Of a stretch of 64,000 bases of DNA, positions 21,008-36,299 are shown piece after piece. Source of the stretch: Trichosphaerium sp. ATCC 40318 (Eukaryota; Protista; Tubulinea); contig JALMLS010000420.1 in assembly GCA_038496445.1 (NCBI GenBank), forward strand, positions 558,001-622,000, in the 5' to 3' direction. A model generated the notes under the pieces. That model was not told the origin of the DNA. It saw nothing but the letters and a program-made list of their open reading frames with translations, and searched no databases. Numbering within the stretch: the first letter of the stretch is position 1; every line of letters starts with the position of its first letter. A program made the position numbers and the translations under genes.

Positions 21008-24000
21008 ATGAAGCTATTGATACTTGTGGTCGCACTGCTGACCTCACAAGTACGTAATTCTCCGTACTGTACAAGACTTAAAGCTGACTCACGTCGCAAA
21101 AGGTCTTATCGCAGAACGCTCCTGGTAAGACTGAAGCTGAAAGATTCACTGGGTTTAGAGATACAACATCTGGAAACTCAGGTACTTTACAAAGTCAAAA
21201 AGCATTTTGCTATTGTCCTAGACCGCCGAAAAAGTAGTATTTTGTTGTGAAAAATGGATCACAAAAACCAACTAGCGCTTGTTATTTTTAATATCGCTTA
21301 ACACTACGATAGGCGGCCAATCTTGTGGGGCTACTCAAAGTGGAACGAATCTAGTAGATTTACAATTGACGTCCGATAGCGGTGGTGGTTGTAATGTTGG
21401 TTGGATAGCAGCTACTGAGTACCTTGAGTACCGCATAAACTTTGCTCGCACAGATAGCTACACAATAAGAGCACGTGTTGCTTCAGCGCCATCTGGTACA
21501 AAAAACATTCAAGTGCGCGTCAATGGTGCCTTGAAGGGTACCATATCTGTAGGAAGCACTGGAGGTACGTCTAAAGACAGAGCAGCAACTAAGAAGAAAC
21601 TAAACTTTAAAACAGGTTGGCAATCATGGCAAACTAGGTCTATCAACATCGGTCAAGTCACAGCTGGAACAAAAACTATTCGCTTAACCTTTCAACAAAG
21701 CAATCTTAACCTCAACTGGATACAATTTGACTACACTGGTTCTCCTTCTAACAATCCTACGATCCAAACTGACGGCAAGAGATTCCACCCTGTAGTTGTA
21801 CGTCTTTTTTACCTCTTTTGTTTTTTTCTCGTTTTCTTTGTGTCACGTGATTTTCGCTTTCTGGCAACTACCGTAATGATCTCTTGGGTGTTCACTTTTT
21901 TTGTTTGATAGGTTACATACACTGGTCCAAGCAGAAGCGAGAATGATGCTGCTACTTTTACCAACTTCAGATTAAACTGCGCTTTCAAGAGAGGTTCTAC
22001 AACCTGGAACATTGCTGGTTTCTTTGCTGCTGATGGTAACGCTGCTGAGTCTTCTGCTACATCTGGAAACAAATGGCGTTGTATTTTCACTCCACCACAA
22101 GATGGTACGGGTCTACTTTCTTTGCTTCAAGTGATACATAATACTAACTATACTTTCAGGTTCATACACTGTTACTGCTTCTTTCAGAACAGGTAATGAT
22201 GTCGCTTTGTCTTTGAATGCAAACGCTGGAAACCCAACTTCGTTCAATGGAAACACCAAATCTTTCTCAATCTCTGGTCTTGGTACTGACAAGAGGCACG
22301 TTTTGTTTCGTAATTTACTATTGTTTTGTCCTTCAAACAAAATATAATAAGCCTTTAGGAGAGACGGTATCTTGGAATACGTTGGTCAACATTACATGAG
22401 ATATTCTCGATCAGGAAAATACTACATCAAGGGAGGTGCAGATTCACCGGAAAACTTCTTGGGTACTCAGTTGTCTATTGGTTAAACGTGTATTTCTAAA
22501 TCTTGTTTTTTCAGCTTACTACGAATTTGACGGTACAGGCAACAAGCATAGATACCAACCTCATCGCAATGACTGGAGGAACGGAGATCCAACATGGAAG
22601 AACGGCAAGGGTAAAAACATTATTGGTAAGCAAAAAACTACACGTTTAATTGTTAAGGTCTTCTAACATGTATGAAGGTGCTTTGAACTACCTTGCAAAT
22701 AAGGGTATGAACTCAATGTACTTCTTGACAATGAACGCTCCACTCGGAGATGGTACGGATTTATATCTATCCCTAATTATTCTTACTGTTATTATAGGAA
22801 AGGACGTCTTCCCATGGACATCAACAAATAACAATGATAGATTTGAATACGATGTATCTAAACTAGCACAATGGGACATTGTCTTGACTCATATGGACAC
22901 ATTAGGTACGATCAAAGATCTGTTTGCGTTTACCACAATCCCTTACAAGTTTTCTAGGTATTATGCTTCATATTGTGACTCAAGAGACCGAGAATGATCA
23001 ACAACTCGATGGTGGTAATTTGGGACGATCAAGGAAACTTTACTATCGTGAAATGGTTGCACGTTTTGGTTATCACGTTGCTATCACGTGGAATATCGGG
23101 GAAGAAAATACTAACACCGATGCTCAAAGAAAAGCATTCATCGACTACATTGACGCTTTGGACGCTTACAAGCACTTGATTGTTGTTCACACTTATCCAA
23201 GCCAACAGGTGCGATAAAGCAGCATAGGAGTGATGTTAACTTTCTTCGCTTAGGAGGGTATTTACGGACCTCTTATTGGAAAAAGAAACTTCTTGGGAGC
23301 TTCTATTCAAAAAGGAAATCCAAACCAAGTCGCAGCAGAAACAAGAAAATGGTGGACACGCTCCGTACGAAAAAACAGAATTGAGTTGTTACATGCTAAG
23401 TTCTTTTTTCTACTAGAACAACAATGGACACAAATGGGTTGTTACATCTGATGAGATTGGGCCTGCCAATGAAGGTGTTCGCCCTGATCCTCCAAATGCT
23501 AATCACATCACTGTCCGTACTCGTGCTCTTTGGGGAAATCTCTTGCAAGGTACGTGAATTGAACATCTCAACAATCCCTGACTTGAATATAAGGTGGTGC
23601 TGGTGTTGAATGGTACTTTGGATACCAATTCCCTCACAACGATCTTAACTTGGAAGACTTCCGTTCACGTAACTCAGTATGGGGTTGGACAAAACACGCT
23701 CTTGACTTCATGGCAAGGTAAACACTCCGCTATATAAAACCTTGATAAAACTAACTCCTTTTCTTTCTCCAGACTTCCTTTTGTAAGTATGAGACCAGGT
23801 GACAATGTTGGAAACGGATACTGCTTTGAGCACAACAGATTCTTTGTCGTATCATTGCCTACTGGAGGTTCATTGAACTTAAGCAGTAAGATTGGTAGTG
23901 GCACATGGCAAGTACAATTTTTCAACCCAAGAAATGGTGTATACAATGGATTTCAGACAATCGGTAGTAACAAGAGGATCAATGCACCAAATAACCAAGA

Positions 24001-24548: not shown

Positions 24549-27481
24549 TTATGTGTTATCACTGAATTCATTCTTACAAGGTGAAATATTCCGCTTCAAG
24601 AAGCGTAGTATCTCTGAAAATACCAACTTTTTGTTGTCGTATAACGTTACACCATGACCTTCATCTTCAAGTCTTAACAGACGACAAGGTACTCGATCCT
24701 GTATAATATCATAAAATTGTTCTGCTTCTGTAATAGGCACGCGCTCATCCATAGCACCTGACAAACAAGTTAGAAAACAATTTTTTGCATAAGTAAGAAA
24801 AAAAAAGGAAAAGCGAATACAAGTGGAACGAGGTTCTTGCGATACTGAGCATAAAATACAAAAAAGGAAAAGTTAATACCATAAATCATTAGAAGAGGAG
24901 CCTTCAAGTTTTCAGCCTTGTTGATGGGACTTATCATTTGTAGTACATCCAAGTCATGTTCAAGTGATCCATATTCTTTTTCACGTTTTGCACGCCTCCA
25001 AGATGCAGTGTTCTTGAGGAACGAGACATAGTTCGTAACTGTTCAGCAATTAGAAGGCAATACCACAATACCACCACAAACAAATCAGTTCGTACCTCCA
25101 CACATGCATATGCCGGCATCAAAAGCATCAGGGAACTGAGTCAAGCAGCTAAGTGTAGCAAAACCACCGTAACTAAAAAAACGTGGTAAGTATAGTTTAA
25201 CGCAAACTACTGTTTGTAAAATCTAACGTCTTAGGTACCTTCCACCCATAACGCAAACTTTGTTGCCCATGTCGTTGTCGTGTATTCTTAGGTGTTTTGC
25301 AAGACATTTTATATCTTGTATAGCATTCAAACGTAATTCTTTATCATCAAGAGCGAGGTACTTCCTTCCGTATCCTTTCAATAAGTTAAGGAGGTTTTTT
25401 TTGAGCTATTACGAACCTGCGCTTCCTCTGATATTGGGTACAACTACAGCGTAATCCATAGCAAGAAGGAATTGCACTCGAGGTTCAAATTGACATTTCG
25501 CTTGTTTTTCAGGGCCACCATGTACCATTATAATGACAGGGAACCCTTCTACAGGGCGTTCCTTTGCTTTCTAAGAGGTTTTTTTTTAGTTTTTGTTTCA
25601 TGAAATAAAGCGCAACTCTTACCGGTATGTACCGCCAGTATGGTACTTTCAAGTCATCAAAACTATTAAAGTCCCTAAGAGAAGGACATACAAACCGTGT
25701 TTGATCTAAGCCTCCGGTGTGTACATCAGTGAGTTGCCAAAATTGTATCTAGAGAAACAGCTGTTAGCAACTTCATTTGATTATGTTACTTACATTTTTT
25801 GTTCTTGTGCTTGCTACCCAGATATTGCATGGTAAAGTAGGTGTAGTAAACGATACTGCAATAAGATTTCCATCGTCACTAATACTTATAGGATCTGTCC
25901 AACACCTTGAATCCGCAGAATACAACATTCCTTCAACAGGCAAAGGTACTTTTGTTATCAGGCTTTTTCCTGAAATTTCTATTGTCGCCCTATACAAATC
26001 AATCACGTACAGCGCTAGATATAATTCTAGCATTGCGCTCTAAGGTACCTGTACAAGTTCATAAATCCGTTAATATTCTGACAAAAGAACACAAGATTGT
26101 AACCGAAGTAAAAATCACGCCGAAGAATAACAGTTTCGGGCTCAATTTCGTAGCTAGGATCGACACCCTGAATTTCATTAATACATTAGCATTAAACACA
26201 TGTTTGAGTTTAGAATAAAAAGCCGTGTACCTCAACAAAGGTTAACGTATTATTTTTAGTGTTAACAACCGCCAAACTCATCTTGTCACGTGAGAAATCT
26301 GTTGATGAATTTAGTGTTGTTGGCTTTCTTTACAAATTTTTGTACCTGTGCACACTAGTATATGATCTTCGTCCATCCATCCGACACCATACCATCTCCA
26401 TTCGTCTGTAGACTCTTTGGATAGTTGTTCTGATGACCAACTCTCTTCCTTCTTCATGACATCGTAAAGAACAAGGTTTTGATTGACATTACTTATTGTT
26501 ATTTCAATCAATAAGAATTTATCTTCTAAACTCGCACTAACTTTTGGTATAGACCGATGAATACTTGGTGTATACCTAAAGGAGAATATCAAAACGCCAG
26601 AAACCGAAACGGTTCAAAGAGGTTGATCAATCGCCAGAATGCTAGTTTCAATAAAATTGCGCTAAAACACGTGTTCACAAATTATACGTACACAAGTTGA
26701 GCAGTGTTCTTGCGAACAGGTATACGCCATCTGTAGATGGAGAACTGAGACTTCATGTCAATATTGGCTCGAAAATACATGTATCTATTAGACGCTAATA
26801 GTAGATTGTGTCTTAGTGTTTGCAATAATAATACTGTATTTAAGTTTGTACTTACTATGCGAAATTATATGCTTTGCTGCTCTGTCTGTTGTTATAAGAC
26901 GAGAGAAAACATTTGTGTCACTTGACACTTCATTGTCAATGATACCGATTTGAAATGCTTCGTTTCCGTTCATGTCAGTGTGATACACAACAGTACCTTT
27001 TATCTAGGGTTAGTTTAACGTAGAAATCAGAACTTATTAGCACCGTCTCGAAGAAAGTATGGTTGAGTGCATCGCTACGATGGATTTTAGATAGTGCAAA
27101 GAAAACTGGAGTTTTCGTGCGTACCTGTGTACTGAACGTTGTCCTGGTTGGCCACTATTAATCCTTTAACATCCTGGTCGGATAACAAGTTAATATTCAA
27201 GCCTGTACCATTGGCCGTCGAACTTCTGGATCCTAATAACGTTATACTCAATACCGTAGAGTAGGTTGTTTGGTGTGTACCACCATAATACTCCAAATCT
27301 GAAATTTGCCTTCATCTGAATCATAGCAGAAGCAGAGCTCGTATGGGCCATCCTTATGCGTAGAAGTATTAGTTTTTCCACTGTTTCTACCGATTTAGAA
27401 GCTTTTTCGCACTTTTGTAGGATTGAACGTTGGTCCTCCCGCTCTTTCTGTACGAAGATATCTTCCTCCGTTGTTACCCAT
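24549..27481 (-). CDS. S9 family serine peptidase (prolyl oligopeptidase/acylaminoacyl-peptidase type; beta-propeller + alpha/beta hydrolase)
   Basis: Start MGNNGGRYLRTERAGGPTFNP; MVHGGPE, PNIRGSAG; catalytic GGSYGG (split by an intron), GAMDERVP and EDEGHG give a full Ser-Asp-His triad. Confidence 0.9.
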
Positions 27482-27673
27482 GTTAACGTCTTAAGAAATA
27501 CAGATATTTTAAGGTCTTGTCTTCTTTTGTAACGAACGTCCAGCTTAGCCTTTACCTGCTGTTCAACAATAGGATTTTGGTGGCCAAAACCATCTGAACA
27601 TCTTATGATTTTGAACAATAGTGTTTGCTTGTCAAAACATTTTTATAGTTTTTACACTCTACAAGGGCACCTC

Positions 27674-30600
27674 ATGCTTACTAAAAGTTCATCAAAGGGT
27701 GCATTGCCAATGTCTAAAGTTCAAATAGACATTTTGGTTCTTTCGGACCATCGAACGATGAAAAAGACAAATTCATTGCTTCATATCTTTGCAACGCTTG
27801 CGAAACATCCAAGCATTGGATCCGTAAGTATTGCAAGTCGAGGAAACCGAGAAAACAAGGACTTTTTCTACAACTATGGCGGACACGAGTTGGTTGTTCA
27901 GAGCGTAAAGGATTTATCAACGGAAGACTACTTGGATCAAACAAACTGCTGTAGCGCATCGGTAGTACAAAATTACCTAGCGTCAATACCCCTAACACAG
28001 TTTGTAGCTACTCGATTATGACTTTGTTTTTAACCGGTAAGTTGTTTCTTTTTCTAGACAGTATTTTTATCAAAGTCTCCATTTGCTGTTTTCAAAAAAA
28101 AACATTTCCGCGTGATAGCACGTGCAAGTATTTTTTGTGCATTTTTTTTGCCTAATTTTCTTCCTTTTTCAGCCTTTCAAGACCAGTCGCTGATGCATTC
28201 TACGATTTTTTGCACCAATTTATCAATACTGAAAATATTATAAATAACGCTGCAGGCGCACGACTTTGTGGTACGTCATTACATCCCCGAAATTGTTTCT
28301 TGAAAATAGAAAAAAAACAAACAATCAACTAAAATATTCTTCAGGATCAAAAGTGTATCTTCTTAAATTCCCGCAACTAACAACGAAAACAATCCTATGT
28401 AAAAATGTAGAAGATGTCAAATCGTTTTTTGAAGAGCATAAAGACGGTACAAAGTGAAGTTATTATCAAGCTGATTATGTAATACAGTTGGTATTGTGCT
28501 AAAGCCTCTAAATGATGGAGGAGGCAGAGGCCTTGTATCTATTAAATCGACTGGCGTATCACTGGAAGGTATGCAACTAAGTTTAAGCTCAATAGATCAT
28601 CACTGAGTTCGTTGCTAGGAAAGAAATCGCTGGGCCTGAAAGAGTTTTGGCCCATTCTTTCAAAACAGCTAGAATCAGAGCATATGATTGCTATGCGCTT
28701 CTTAAAAAATGTTGGACAAGGCGACAAGAGAGTGCTTGTTGTTAATGGCGAGATTGTTGGACAATCATTGCGTGTACCAAAGAAAGGTAACTGGATGTGC
28801 AACGTTTCTCAAGGAGGCAGTGTTGAGGCATGTGATGTTAAACCTGAAGAAGTTGTTATATTCAAAACACTTTGGGAAGATCTTTCTAAGCATGGTATTG
28901 TCATGTTCGGTTTTGATACTCTTGTTGGAGATGATGGTAAAAGAGTACTGTCAGAAATTAATCCAGGGTATGTATTTTGTAAAATACTCAGTCACGTGAT
29001 GTTAATTTTGTTGAAGAAACGTTGGTGGGTTTGTAAATGGCTTACCAAGCAATGAAGACACTTTATCAAAAACAAGCAAATTGCTTGCTAGCCATATGCT
29101 CAATATAATGAGAGGTCATGTAGAACACGGTATTGATATAGTAAAGCTTGTGACATACTATGGTCGCAACAGGTATGTTTTTGAAATCTTTACAACGTTC
29201 TGACAAGAATAGGTTTTTTGAAAGACAAGTTGTAATGGTCCTTATTGAAACAAGTCAAGTTGAGGACTTGTACATCAAAAATCGGGCCAATATTCTAAAG
29301 AGGCTACGATCAGAGTTTCTCGGATTTGAAGCTAAAGATAATGCTAACCTTGGAGACGTTACAGCGTGCCTTGGTGTTGCACTTCAAGTGCGAAAAAACA
29401 ATCGTAGTTTATCCTTTATTGTAACTTTTTAAATTAGAGTGCACGTGTAAGTGTTGCTAAGATGTATTGGAATTCTTTAAAAACAAAAATACAAGATAGT
29501 GACTATCAAGTAATTTTTGAGTACGAAGATGTTCCAGAAATGGGTGCGTAACACAAACTTTATAAAGGGGTTTTTTCTTCGTTTTTGAACATTATTGCTT
29601 CTGTGAGACAGTTTCTTACTTGCGTTTAGGAAAGTTGATCGCACGAAAGACTGTGGCGATACTCAATCTTCTTGTTACTGACTGTAACGCTTCTTTTGAT
29701 GGAATCGATAGCAAGTTTCCTATTAGTAACTATTTTCTTGGTCCAACTGTTCGTGCTATTGCTCTAGAAGCATCAAGGAACAATATTCCGTTTTCAAGAC
29801 TTGCCAAAACAAGTCAACTTATTCAGCTCGGTACGTGATACAATAACTCCGCCCGGCACCATATTAGGTTTGTTATTCTGAGTTTATCTTTAGGCCAAGG
29901 TTGTAAATCAAAGTGGTTTCGAACACTTGGTTCTTTCAACAGTAACATGAGCAACGAAATATCCGACAACAAAGAAACAACAAAGAGAATTCTTGCTAGT
30001 GTTGGTATCCCTGTACCACGTGGTCTTGTTTGTTCAAATTTGGCTGATGTGTTGGCTGCAAGTAATAAGCTTGGATGGCCTCTCGTCACAAAGCCAACCG
30101 ATTCTAAGGGAGGCAATGGTATCACTGTTGATATAAACGATGAAGAAAGTCTCAAGCAGGGTAAGTGCTTACCGTACTAGATCGTTGCATAGATTTACGA
30201 CTAACAATTAACTAGGGTATGAATTCGCTTTGCAGTTCTCTGCCAAAGTAATTTTGGAGCGTTATGTCAGAGGAAACGACTATAGAGTTTTAGTTGTATA
30301 CGACGAAGTCGTAGCAGTTACGCACAGGCTACCAGCTTTTGTGGATGGTGCGTACCCTGAGAAGTATTTTTGATTGGACTGGTACTAACAATGGCTTCAG
30401 GTAATGGTGTTAACACAGTCCAAGAGCTCATAGAAATAACAAACAAAGATCCAAGACGAGGACAATCTCATGAGAATGTTCTTACTAAGATTAAGATCGA
30501 TGGACCTCTTATTTCAACGTTAAAGAAGCAAGAAATGGATTTAAATACTGTTCCAAAAGATGGATTGCGAGTGTGGGTGAAAAGTACTGCTAACTTGTCA

Positions 30601-32558
30601 ACTGGTGGTAAGTCTTAGCTTATTATGTTTGACTTGAAAACTGGAGTAATGCATTTTAGGTGTCGGTATTGATGTGACCGACAGTATTCACTACCAAAAT
30701 AAAATTTTGTGTTTGCGTGCAGCTAAAGCAATTGGTTTAGATGTTACTGGAATTGGTGAGTGCAAGGAGAATGCAGTTCTTTTTTTCTCAGTTTTTTCCA
30801 CTTTTTTTTACATGCGTATTTGGTGCTTACTGTTTCGCAGATATTCTCACCACTGATATTTCTCAACCAATAACAGAAATCGGGGGTGTTATTATTGAAG
30901 TTAATTCAAGGCCTGGTACAAGAATGCACTTATCCCCATATCAGGTACGATCAGCTTGTTTGTTGGGTTTTTTATCGTTTTTTTTAACCTTATTTTCAGG
31001 GAAAACCTCGTGATCCAACGCCAAAAGTAATATCTCACATGTTCCCATCATTATCCGCTCGTATTCCTATAGTTGCCATCGCAGGTAGTTTGGGAAAGAC
31101 AACAACCGCAAAGATGGTTCAGCATATCCTACAGTACGCCAATTTTATAAAAACCACCTTCAAAGTCACTCCAGCTTACCATCTTCCATAGGAACACAGC
31201 TTATAATGTACGCTTAATTCTTGGAATATCAATGGTCGTAATTCAATGTTTGTTGACTCTTGCTAGGTCGGAATGGCTGTCACGGATGGTATTTTCGTTC
31301 AAGGAGTTCAATACCAGACAAGAAGCGCTCATGATTCTTGGGGTGCAAAGACGATTCTTAGAGATCCTACAGTCACTATTGCTTTACTTGAGCTTTCTCC
31401 AGATACAATCCTAAAGCAAGGATTGGTATACGGAGAATGTGATATCGCTGTACTTACAGGCATAAATGATAACTCCGAACTCCTAAAAAAAACAGCTCTT
31501 GGAACTGTTTCTGAGCCTTTGGAAGGGTTAGTATTGAAATCACTGAAACCTGAAGGAAGCACAGCTGTAGTAGATATTGATAACGATGAAATGGGATCTT
31601 TGATTAACGTACCAAAAGACTATCTTGAAAAACTCCCACTTAACAGCTACCACTAGAATTATCCTGGAGTAAACTTTATTTACATAACGACTAATCTCGA
31701 TCACCCTCTTCTACAGACCCAGGATTTTATTGAGAACGGAACTGCTGTTGTTGTAAGAGATGCCTCTATCTGTATTATGAAAGGCACAAAGGTCACACAG
31801 GTATTTAGCAATAGGACCTTCAACACTTACTGTTTCAGTTTTTCTCATTTTTTTTGAAGGTAATTGATTTGAAGCTCATCCCTGCAACGTTTCATGGAAT
31901 TCTTGAAGTGAATGTCTATAACTGTTTGTCAGCATTCGCTACTGCTTATGCTCTGGGTATACGTGTCGAAAAGATAAAATATGCGTTGAATTCCCTTCGA
32001 ATTCAAGCTATCCCTGGAAAGATGAACATCTTCTCTTATGTAAATGGTTCACATATCTTGGTGGACTCTCCGTCTTCGTTGACAGCAATTTCTGCGTTGG
32101 CGAAGTTTGTACAGCGTATGAAGACTGGCCCTTTGAATGTAAGTCATGCCACCAAAGATGTCTAGTAGTACTAACAAGCTTATTTAAGGTCGTTAGAGCA
32201 ACAATTTTAAGTGCACTTTCGACAAACTTGACAACCAAGTTTATTGAGATTTACAGTGCCAAGCTTTCTCAAGTGTTTGATAAGGCTTTGGTAGTCACAA
32301 GTGTTGCTCAAAACAAGTACATTGAGATGTTACCTAACAATACACCTAACGTATGTATCATTGTAAAGACTTACATTCTTTGGCTTATACCTTTTTTTAC
32401 AGGCACCAACAGTTGTGTTCATGAAAGCTTCTTTGGAAAGCTCGATCACTTACAGCTTGGATATGCTAAGAGGAAACCAAGAGTTATTAGTAGTCATGAC
32501 AGATAGACCTTCAATAGTCGTTGAAATGCTTGAAGATACATGTGTTCCTTTATCTTAA
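27674..32558 (+). CDS. cphA: Fusion of GshB-like ATP-grasp ligase with cyanophycin synthetase-like protein (N, G/ATP-grasp and degenerate M/Mur-ligase domains), multi-exon
   Basis: GshB-like: VLKPLNDGGGRG, GQGDKRVLVVNGE, WMCNVSQGG, GFDTL...LSEIN. CphA-like: LGPTVRAI, QLGQG, DNKETTKRIL..GIPVPRG, PLVTKP, GNDYRVLVV, NKDPRRGQSHENVLTKI, TANLSTGG, IEVNSRPGTRMHLSP, RIPIVAIAGSLGKTTT, ILRDPTV. The junction is stop-free inside one exon (about 29017-29172). Confidence 0.88.
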
Positions 32559-34934: not shown

Positions 34935-36283
34935 TGAAAGTTCAAAGCTGAGAGTATTTCGAGCAAAACAAGCTCTTGATCCTACACCTGAACACGAATT
35001 TAAGCGTGGATCTTTGCTAGCCTGTGAATGAACATTTATTTATTTTATTCAAAGGGCTTGTACTAGCGGTTTTGGCGCTAGGGATACAGAGCAGTTTCAC
35101 TAGTGTACTATTATAGCATGGTAAGAAAAGTATTTTGACATGCCTTTTTTGGTTACAATAAAATGACTGAAAACTTTCAATATTTTGTTTAAAACGGTCT
35201 TCTTTTTTTTAGTAAGGTTAAAAAGACTGAAGTTTGTCCATCACTGACTCAAAGAGATCGCGGTGGTTTTATTTTTCCGTTGAACGGTAATAGTTATGCC
35301 CCATATCATGAGTACTACATCACGTGATTGTACAGCATATTTTAAAGTGATAGGAAAAGTGTAGTTTTTTGTTGTACGATATTTTTACGGTATCGTACAT
35401 GTCCTTACATAGGTAACCACGTGTTACACGTAACAGTATTGAATCTAAACTGCAGGACAAAATCAACGGAAAAACTCGTCGTGCACACTTTATTGTGTAC
35501 TATCTTTACTAGCACAAATCGGCTAAACACATACAAGCAACAACAGATAAAACAATGAAGCTATTGATACTTGTGGTCGCACTGCTGACCTCACAAGTAC
35601 GTAATTGTCCGTATCGCACCCTGACCAATGATACAACAAAAAGGTCTTATCGCAGAACGCTCCTGGTAAGACTGAAGCTGAAACATTCATTGGATTTAGA
35701 GATACAACAGCTGGAAACACAGGTACTGTACAAAGTCGAAGAGGATTTTGTTATGCTCTCGAACACCAAAAAGTAATTTTGTTTTGAAAAATGGATCAAA
35801 GATCACAAAAACCAACTAGCGCTTGTTATTTTTAATATCGCTTAACACTACGATAGGCGGCCAATCTTGTGGCGCTACTCAAAGTGGAACGAATCTAGTG
35901 GATCTAGAATTGACATCCGACAGCGGTGGTGGTTGTAATGTTGGTTGGATAGCAGCTACTGAGTACCTTGAGTACCGCATAAGCTTTGATCGCACAGATA
36001 GCTACATAATAAGAGCACGTGTTGCTTCAGGGCGATCTGGTACAAAGAACATTCAAGTGCGCGTTGACGGTATCTTGAAGGGTACCATATCTGTAGGAAA
36101 CACTGGAGGTATGTCTAAAAACCAAAGTAGAAACCCAAGAAAAGCTGTGATACTAAACTTTAAAAAAGGTTGGCAATCATGGCAAACTAGGTCTGTCAAT
36201 ATCGGTCACATGTCATCTGGAATAACAACTGTTCGATTAACCTTTCAACAAAGTAATCTTAACCTCAACTGGATACAATTTGA
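34935..36283 (+). repeat. Local segmental duplicate of about 20025-21731 (upstream region plus CBM6 exons and introns)
   Basis: Near-identical blocks, e.g. TGTGTACTATCTTTACTAGCA...CACATACAAGCAACAACAGATAAAA and the exons/introns through GGATACAATTTGA; patchy similarity further upstream. Confidence 0.9.
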
Positions 36284-36299
36284 TAGGCTGTTCTTGTAA
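35555..36299 (+). CDS. Stand-alone secreted CBM6 protein (truncated paralogue of the 21008 gene; could be a pseudogene)
   Basis: Same exon structure as 21008-21731; ends NLNWIQFDRLFL* exactly at the CBM6 boundary. Confidence 0.75.

Follow-up and report, generated by a model that had tools for sequence, protein, structure and literature searches.

Cyanophycin synthetases are described in the literature as bacterial enzymes; a published bioinformatic survey of cyanophycin genes does not mention eukaryotes, and our full-text literature search brought up none described as native to a eukaryote. In CphA1, the domains are arranged in the order N-G-M, and in 83% of the CphA1s a Cx19HxxEH metallopeptidase motif makes primers (PMC9262961). 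CphA2, which is cyanobacterial and has a total length of ~630-640 amino acids (aa), carries an inactive M domain truncated to ~150 aa, and its G domain alone polymerises preformed beta-Asp-Arg. Here, we analysed a gene located in a stretch of 64,000 nucleotides of the eukaryote Trichosphaerium sp. ATCC 40318 (this whole stretch is referred to as the window), in which a GshB-like ATP-grasp domain is fused to a CphA-like protein. An original prediction had interpreted positions 29130-32558 as a CphA2-like dipeptide polymerase fed by its own fused ligase. The reading that we favour, tentatively and with a probability of about 45%, is that the gene product is an amino-acid polymerase resembling cyanophycin synthetase and having three ligase-type domains, in which the added GshB-like ligase would supply the second ligation.

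Gene structure, transcription and selection

The coding sequence (CDS) extends from position 27674 to 32558 on the + strand and comprises, in the spliced model, 22 exons separated by 21 GT-AG introns, which together encode 1207 aa. The stretch 29130-32558 corresponds to the 3' two thirds of this gene and is not a single open reading frame (ORF): the longest ORF within it has 127 aa, and the longest single coding exon of the gene has 116 aa. Numerous short in-frame segments of this stretch match cyanophycin synthetase and Mur-ligase or ATP-grasp families. The start at 29130 coincides with that of the CphA N domain at 29126, and the motifs quoted in the original prediction are all present, though only on the spliced product. 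The protein is organised as follows.

27674..28965 (+), GshB-like ATP-grasp domain, aa 1-315, exons 1-6 (PF02955, NCBIfam GshB, 1GSA)
28966..29125 (+), linker, aa 316-352, spanning intron 28968-29016 and matching neither parent family (BLAST to CphA1 starts at aa 353)
29126..29829 (+), CphA N domain, aa 353-528 (BLAST to bacterial CphA N domains, 27-33% identity)
29830..31008 (+), G domain (ATP-grasp polymerase), aa 529-800 (phmmer to 7wac/7lg5/7lgn; MAFFT)
31009..32555 (+), full-length Mur-ligase-like M domain, aa 801-1207 (phmmer to CphA1 M domains; PF08245 on the P-loop exon; MAFFT)

BLAST and phmmer along aa 353-1202 thus recover the order N-G-M with a full-length M domain, as in CphA1.

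The mRNA spans ~27654 to ~32610, and spliced copies are present in four public runs. One transcript contig of 3596 nt (run X4) extends from 27654 to ~32510 and covers the GshB-like as well as the CphA-like part; because a single contig runs through both, the fusion is real at the mRNA level, and the fused ligase proposed in the original prediction does share an mRNA with the CphA part. The introns are 40-136 nt long (median 53), giving a density of 5.8 introns per kb of CDS; the GC content is 39% in the CDS, 34% in the introns and 37.5% in the window. The 64-kb window as a whole is very intron-dense and has just two stop-free stretches of more than 200 aa. Fifteen transcript joints were listed, 14 of them as GT..AG. 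The fifteenth, 31134>31267, listed as TA..AG with 15 letters between, corresponds to two GT-AG introns around a microexon, and the remaining 5 of the 21 introns were deduced from the coordinates of the 3596-nt contig, depth bins and frame continuity. Taken with the listed joints, these data gave a single, unique gene model.

31192..31207 (+), microexon of 16 nt (15 extra letters at joint 31134>31267 in three runs)

The microexon is flanked by introns 31134-31191 (58 nt) and 31208-31266 (59 nt), both of which start with GTACGC and end with TAG. Contamination by bacterial DNA was considered and rejected in view of the spliceosomal introns, the eukaryotic neighbours and a CDS GC content close to that of the window.

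A comparison of the window with transcripts of a second organism (organism B, runs X2/X3) lists 40 differing CDS sites, 35 of them synonymous and five non-synonymous (pN/pS 0.042, binomial p 6e-18 against neutrality); eight further differences lie outside these 40 sites. The whole 1207-aa frame, the intact G active site included, is under strong purifying selection. From aa 816 onward, that is, in the M domain, 13 of the listed differences are synonymous and none is non-synonymous, and hence this domain, despite the degenerate motifs described below, is not freely decaying and still has some role. The gene is nuclear, expressed, of bacterial ancestry and under purifying selection. Being expressed, interrupted by 21 introns, strongly constrained and equipped with a complete polymerase site, it is probably functional.

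The polymerase, primer and Mur-type sites

The residue roles in the G domain were taken from TeCphA1 (PMC9427784) and mapped via 7WAC and MAFFT alignments, with the following result.

E215, contacts the Arg side chain of the terminal unit: E550 here
R309, holds the C-terminal carboxylate: R641 here
R323, binds the incoming aspartate: R655 here
N394, binds the incoming aspartate: N726 here
S396, binds the incoming aspartate: S728 here
G456, oxyanion: G788 here
R458, binds the incoming aspartate: R790 here
H267, G-domain P-loop: G601 here, with Lys600 adjacent

Hence, seven of the eight tested residues for the polymer end, the acyl-phosphate and Asp are retained, in agreement with CphA1. The G-domain motifs are located at these positions.

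aa 594-596, TKP
aa 639-645, DYRVLVV
aa 678-692, DPRRGQSHENVLTKI
aa 725-731, ANLSTGG
aa 782-792, EVNSRPGTRMH

The domain is 50% identical to that of P0033, a canonical bacterial CphA1 encoded beside an S51 cyanophycinase. The polymerase site is intact and still has the look of one made for an Asp backbone that bears cationic side chains. Against solved CphA1, the two largest G exons reach 42.5-48 and 48-55 bits, versus 35-38 and 20-22 bits against solved CphA2 (8FXH/7TA5). This comparison speaks against a place in the CphA2 lineage. The protein forms a long branch within an unresolved CphA1 radiation in a maximum-likelihood G-domain tree.

In the N domain, the metal site has been replaced, as the original prediction had noted. 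The MAFFT columns show that the HxxEH peptidase motif is absent (H to D416, E to A419, H to C420).

29352..29369 (+), GDVTAC at the HxxEH site, aa 415-420 (MAFFT columns)

Because the site reads D..AC and the upstream Cys of the Cx19HxxEH motif is also missing, the protein groups with the primer-dependent minority of CphA1s, such as TmCphA1.

The equivalence of the M-domain motifs to those of CphA1 was established by phmmer against solved CphA1 structures and by MAFFT with 26 full-length bacterial CphA1 homologues, to which the counts below refer.

31084..31107 (+), P-loop GSLGKTTT, kept (GKTT at aa 829-832; K830 = TeCphA1 K499); AGSLGKTT here for TGTNGKTT (T-G-[TS]-N-GKTT; N 22/26, K 25/26) (MAFFT)
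31321..31341 (+), RSAHDSW for GDxTGPW (SAHDSW at aa 867-872); RSAHDS here for GDxTGP (G-D-x-[TS]-G-P; D 23/26, G 24/26, P 19/26) (phmmer, MAFFT)
31390..31407 (+), ELSPDT for ETARGG (R 25/26, G 25/26), aa 889-894, with the Glu kept (phmmer, MAFFT)
31459..31485 (+), GINDNSELL for N[IV]xxDH[LI], with Asn, Asp and His lost (NDNSE at aa 914-918); GINDNSEL here for N[IV]xxDH (N 25/26, D 23/26, H 24/26) (phmmer, MAFFT)
32013..32078 (+), PGKMN for PGRxN (PGR to PGK; R 25/26) and DSPSS for DY[AG]HN (DSPSS at aa 1078-1082; H 24/26, N 23/26) (phmmer, MAFFT)

The claim that the M domain keeps GKTT and departs at GDxTGP, ETARGG, DHLG (part of N[IV]xxDH[LI]) and DYAHN is borne out by these alignments, in which each of these lost motifs, like PGR, is conserved in 19-26 of the 26 homologues; the retention of the G domain alongside the lost M motifs is borne out as well; the change of PGR to PGK, together with the replacement of H267 by Gly and of R233 of the GshB-like domain by Met, goes beyond what had been noticed. 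From the catalytic set of the CphA1 M domain (P-loop Lys, Mg-binding Glu, NxxxDH, PGR, DYAHN, ETARGG and GDxTGP) only the P-loop Lys (K830), the Glu (E889) and an Asp (D1078) survive. With respect to the Mur ligase superfamily, the universal motif NxxxDH is absent and the Arg of the C-terminal domain has become Lys, while the match at the level of the fold is kept (PF08245 on the P-loop exon and MurE-like matches). The M and N domains are only 26-33% identical to those of CphA1s.

In SuCphA1, the M-dead mutant is D585A/H586A, in which M activity is abolished (PMC9262961), and this DH pair is exactly the one missing here. An effect of the K499A mutation has been reported for TeCphA1 (PMC9427784). 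Judged by its motifs, the Mur-type site is likely disabled. An alternative is that M is still active with non-canonical residues, so that the protein would have three working ligase sites and would make cyanophycin, or a relative of it, to which the GshB-like domain would add a further modification or a cap. The GKTT P-loop and Glu889 are kept, the Arg of PGR is conservatively replaced by Lys, the mobile lid, which is dispensable in CphA2, is present at full length, and the 13 listed M differences include no non-synonymous change. Nevertheless, NxxxDH, present in 23-25 of the 26 homologues and containing the target of the published M-dead mutation, has been lost together with DYAHN, ETARGG and GDxTGP, and we consider an active M domain quite unlikely.

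A predicted loss of the Mur-type site is the part of the CphA2-like interpretation that stands; neither build nor descent agrees with it, as the M domain has 407 aa with the P-loop and lid region kept, and the G exons are nearer to CphA1. The G-domain tree also separates the protein from a well-supported bacterial clade with seven degenerate-M members, and it requires at least four origins of the degenerate-M state, which indicates that decay of M is recurrent and occurred independently here. The possibility that the degenerate-M bacterial clade itself represents CphA2 was rejected, P0046 being closer to solved CphA1.

The GshB-like domain and a possible mechanism

PF02955 is matched in order over three consecutive exons with 20.3, 14.9 and 62.8 bits, the last of these matches being located at 28546-29052. 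Among NCBIfam models, those for GshB match the N-terminal domain best, and its best solved match is 1GSA; aligned over 227 aa, it shares 29.5% identity with E. coli GshB (E 9e-24). The best exon reaches 64 bits against a whole-protein NCBIfam equivalog cut-off of 272, a weak comparison, as the exons were scored singly. As expected for a GshB-type ATP-grasp domain, residues for ATP, Mg and the acyl-phosphate are present: the equivalents of GshB K160, R210, R225 (R251 here), D273, E281 and N283 are all kept. In the flexible-loop region, the equivalent of R233 is Met259 in the alignments to 1GSA and E. coli GshB.

28771..28818 (+), GshB-like flexible-loop region RVPKKGNWMCNVSQGG (alignment to 1GSA, E. 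coli GshB)

No match to the N-terminal substrate domain GSH-S_N (PF02951) was found on exon 1, and of the 150 proteins listed as matches of the M exon, none aligned with the N-terminal 315 aa other than by weak ATP-grasp cross-matches. The replacement of R233 by Met and the undetectable GSH-S_N domain suggest changed substrates, and we take the domain to be an ATP-grasp ligase that works, though probably with another acceptor and another nucleophile. The known enzymes of the GshB/RimK/LysX/MptN/CofF group attach an amino acid to the carboxylate of a peptide, a protein tail or a cofactor tail, and in those of the GshB/RimK/LysX group the carboxylate that is extended belongs to a larger acceptor.

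These observations also bear on the view that the fusion has no mechanistic meaning, i.e. that an ordinary glutathione or small-peptide synthetase has been joined to a CphA-like remnant, which may be non-catalytic or regulatory. No family, after all, matches the N-terminal part better than GshB does, and fusions of unrelated enzymes occur in eukaryotes. Against this stand the limited identity to E. coli GshB, the replaced R233 and the missing GSH-S_N match, as well as the strong purifying selection over the entire frame including the intact G site; moreover, the loss of one ligase site and the presence of an extra one in the same protein is suggestive, though possibly a coincidence. We therefore regard a meaningless fusion as improbable, to much the same degree as an active M domain.

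According to the reading that we favour, in which we infer the catalytic roles and the nature of the product from the sequence, the competent ATP-grasp G domain would extend an aspartate backbone whose last unit has a cationic side chain, as CphA1 does. M would no longer carry out the standard ATP-dependent side-chain ligation; kept at full length under selection, it would probably serve a structural role or bind the polymer or a nucleotide. The extra N-terminal ATP-grasp domain of the GshB/RimK type would then supply the second ligation. Precedents for this are the recurrent decay of M among the bacterial relatives and the polymerisation by CphA2 through its G domain alone. Two versions can be envisaged: (a) the GshB-like domain may act on the side-chain carboxylate of the terminal Asp of the polymer, thereby directly replacing M, or (b) it may make a free beta-Asp-X dipeptide that is polymerised by the G domain. 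The carboxylate-extending habit of GshB, RimK and LysX means that decoration of a polymer is no worse a fit than the making of a free dipeptide. Version (a) seems slightly more likely, because the Asp-binding residues are kept and the G domain is CphA1-like.

Version (b) is also, in essence, what the original prediction had put forward: a CphA2-style route in which a free dipeptide, either beta-Asp-Arg or some other, comes from the GshB-like domain and is polymerised by the G domain. We have weighed it on its own, although it is a sub-case of the explanation above. It would account for the lost M motifs next to an intact G domain, has a precedent in the dipeptide polymerisation by the G domain of CphA2, and accords with the fact that GshB uses a small-molecule carboxylate substrate. 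However, the G domain is clearly nearer to that of the Asp-using CphA1 than to solved CphA2, the residues that bind free aspartate in TeCphA1 (R323, N394, S396 and R458) are all kept, and M is of full length, unlike in CphA2. Because no sequence signature is known that separates Asp-using from dipeptide-using G domains, versions (a) and (b) cannot be told apart by sequence. We consider the dipeptide route unlikely.

Several observations weigh against the proposal of a GshB-like ligase supplying the second ligation. The M domain retains the Walker-A Lys, the Mg-binding Glu and the whole lid under strong constraint, and therefore a non-canonical M activity is conceivable. Arg233, replaced here by Met, is reportedly critical in E. 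coli GshB. His267, which is important in TeCphA1 and SuCphA1, is Gly here; the position is H, Q or K among homologues, and in view of this variation its loss is a reason for caution and does not disqualify the G domain. Finally, no orthologue turned up by which the conservation of the architecture could be judged: an M-exon query against 1.84 billion protein representatives returned nothing above 40% identity and no self-hit, and no relative was found among the JGI metagenome contigs.

A more far-reaching view is that this eukaryote makes a non-ribosomal poly-amino-acid, which would be cyanophycin or a relative with another side chain, by means of a GshB/RimK-type domain that replaces the Mur-type ligation, perhaps with the neighbouring S9 peptidase described below as degrading partner. 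We consider this view in its entirety doubtful. If true, it would represent a new catalytic layout for this class of polymerases and the first native cyanophycin-like pathway outside bacteria, and it could yield a new polyamide of biotechnological interest. Replacement of the Mur-type site by an ATP-grasp domain would show that evolution has found a second way to attach a side chain each time the backbone has grown by one step, and the protein would offer a clean natural experiment on the roles of the M domain besides catalysis.

Neighbouring genes, relatives and known systems

The bacterial cphA gene often adjoins a gene for an S51 cyanophycinase. Next to the synthetase gene studied here lies a peptidase gene of another family.

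24549..27593 (-), S9 (prolyl-oligopeptidase family) serine peptidase gene (PF00326 on three exons; GGSYGG-type sequence)

The two genes are arranged head-to-head, with mRNA starts that are ~60-250 bp apart. The 5' exon of the peptidase gene is joined across intron 27352-27411, a transcript having a loose end at 27412, and its transcript contig is present in the same runs as that of the synthetase at similar assembler depth. The S9 peptidase, which does not belong to the S51 cyanophycinase family, is a possible co-regulated partner and at most a lead for a degrading enzyme. Near-identical exon starts that encode a CBM6/CBM35 carbohydrate-binding module are present at 21276-21905 and 35820-36296 (+), the first ~6 kb upstream of the synthetase gene and the second ~3 kb downstream of it, which places this locus between duplicated genes. 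The window also contains an exon of a PDR/ABCG transporter. Searches of the ESM Atlas with three exons gave only generic GshB, Mur-ligase or ABCG clusters.

Several of the bacterial sequences deserve mention. P0104 (868 aa, from a contig of Logan ERR12040029) is of CphA1 length with an intact G domain and an M domain that is fully degenerate, including the P-loop; its gene overlaps the stop of an upstream gene of 758 aa, and among the bacterial proteins it comes closest to having a dead M domain of full length. On the bacterial metagenome contig L005 (1735-10804), at least five paralogous genes of the CphA-like type are arranged in tandem, together with an unknown gene of 623 aa. These paralogues combine a G domain with a truncated or degenerate M domain, share 28-40% mutual identity, and look like an uncharacterised multi-ligase system. 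The opposite pattern is seen in P0038, P0039, P0080, P0100 and P0126, which are of CphA1 length and have intact M motifs with degenerate or deleted G motifs. No GshB-like partner gene was found in the neighbourhoods of the bacterial relatives.

In summary, the protein resembles parts of several known systems. With the bacterial decayed-M CphA-like proteins (P0104; the P0012/P0046/P0054 clade of 650-700 aa; the L005 array), which are uncharacterised, it shares an intact G domain and the replacement of ETARGG and DH, some of them even reading E-L-S-P-x-[ST] like the protein described here. However, they have no GshB-like fusion, most of them are without P-loop and M lid, and they are not specifically related to it in the G-domain tree. 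With GshB and the RimK-LysX enzymes it has in common the PF02955 ATP-grasp domain with the ATP, Mg and acyl-phosphate residues kept; it differs from GshB in having Met in place of R233, an unrecognisable N-terminal substrate domain, a fusion to a polymerase, and an identity of only 29.5%. The likeness to CphA2 (Gloeothece 7TA5, Stanieria 8FXH) consists of an M domain predicted to be inactive as a Mur-type ligase, an N domain without the peptidase motif, and a G domain as the sole canonical active site of the CphA part, whereas the M domain of CphA2 has ~150 aa versus the 407 aa with P-loop found here, the decay having been independent and not due to shared descent. In its N-G-M order, its full-length M domain and its G domain (40-50% identical, with the tested polymer- and Asp-binding residues kept save H267), it is like CphA1 (7LG5 of Synechocystis UTEX2470, 7WAC of Trichodesmium, and those of A. 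baylyi and T. morbirosei), and like TmCphA1 it is without the primer-making HxxEH site; in contrast to CphA1, it is encoded by a eukaryotic gene with 21 introns, has an extra GshB-like N-terminus of 315 aa, and has had its M motifs, catalytic as well as CphA1-specific, replaced.

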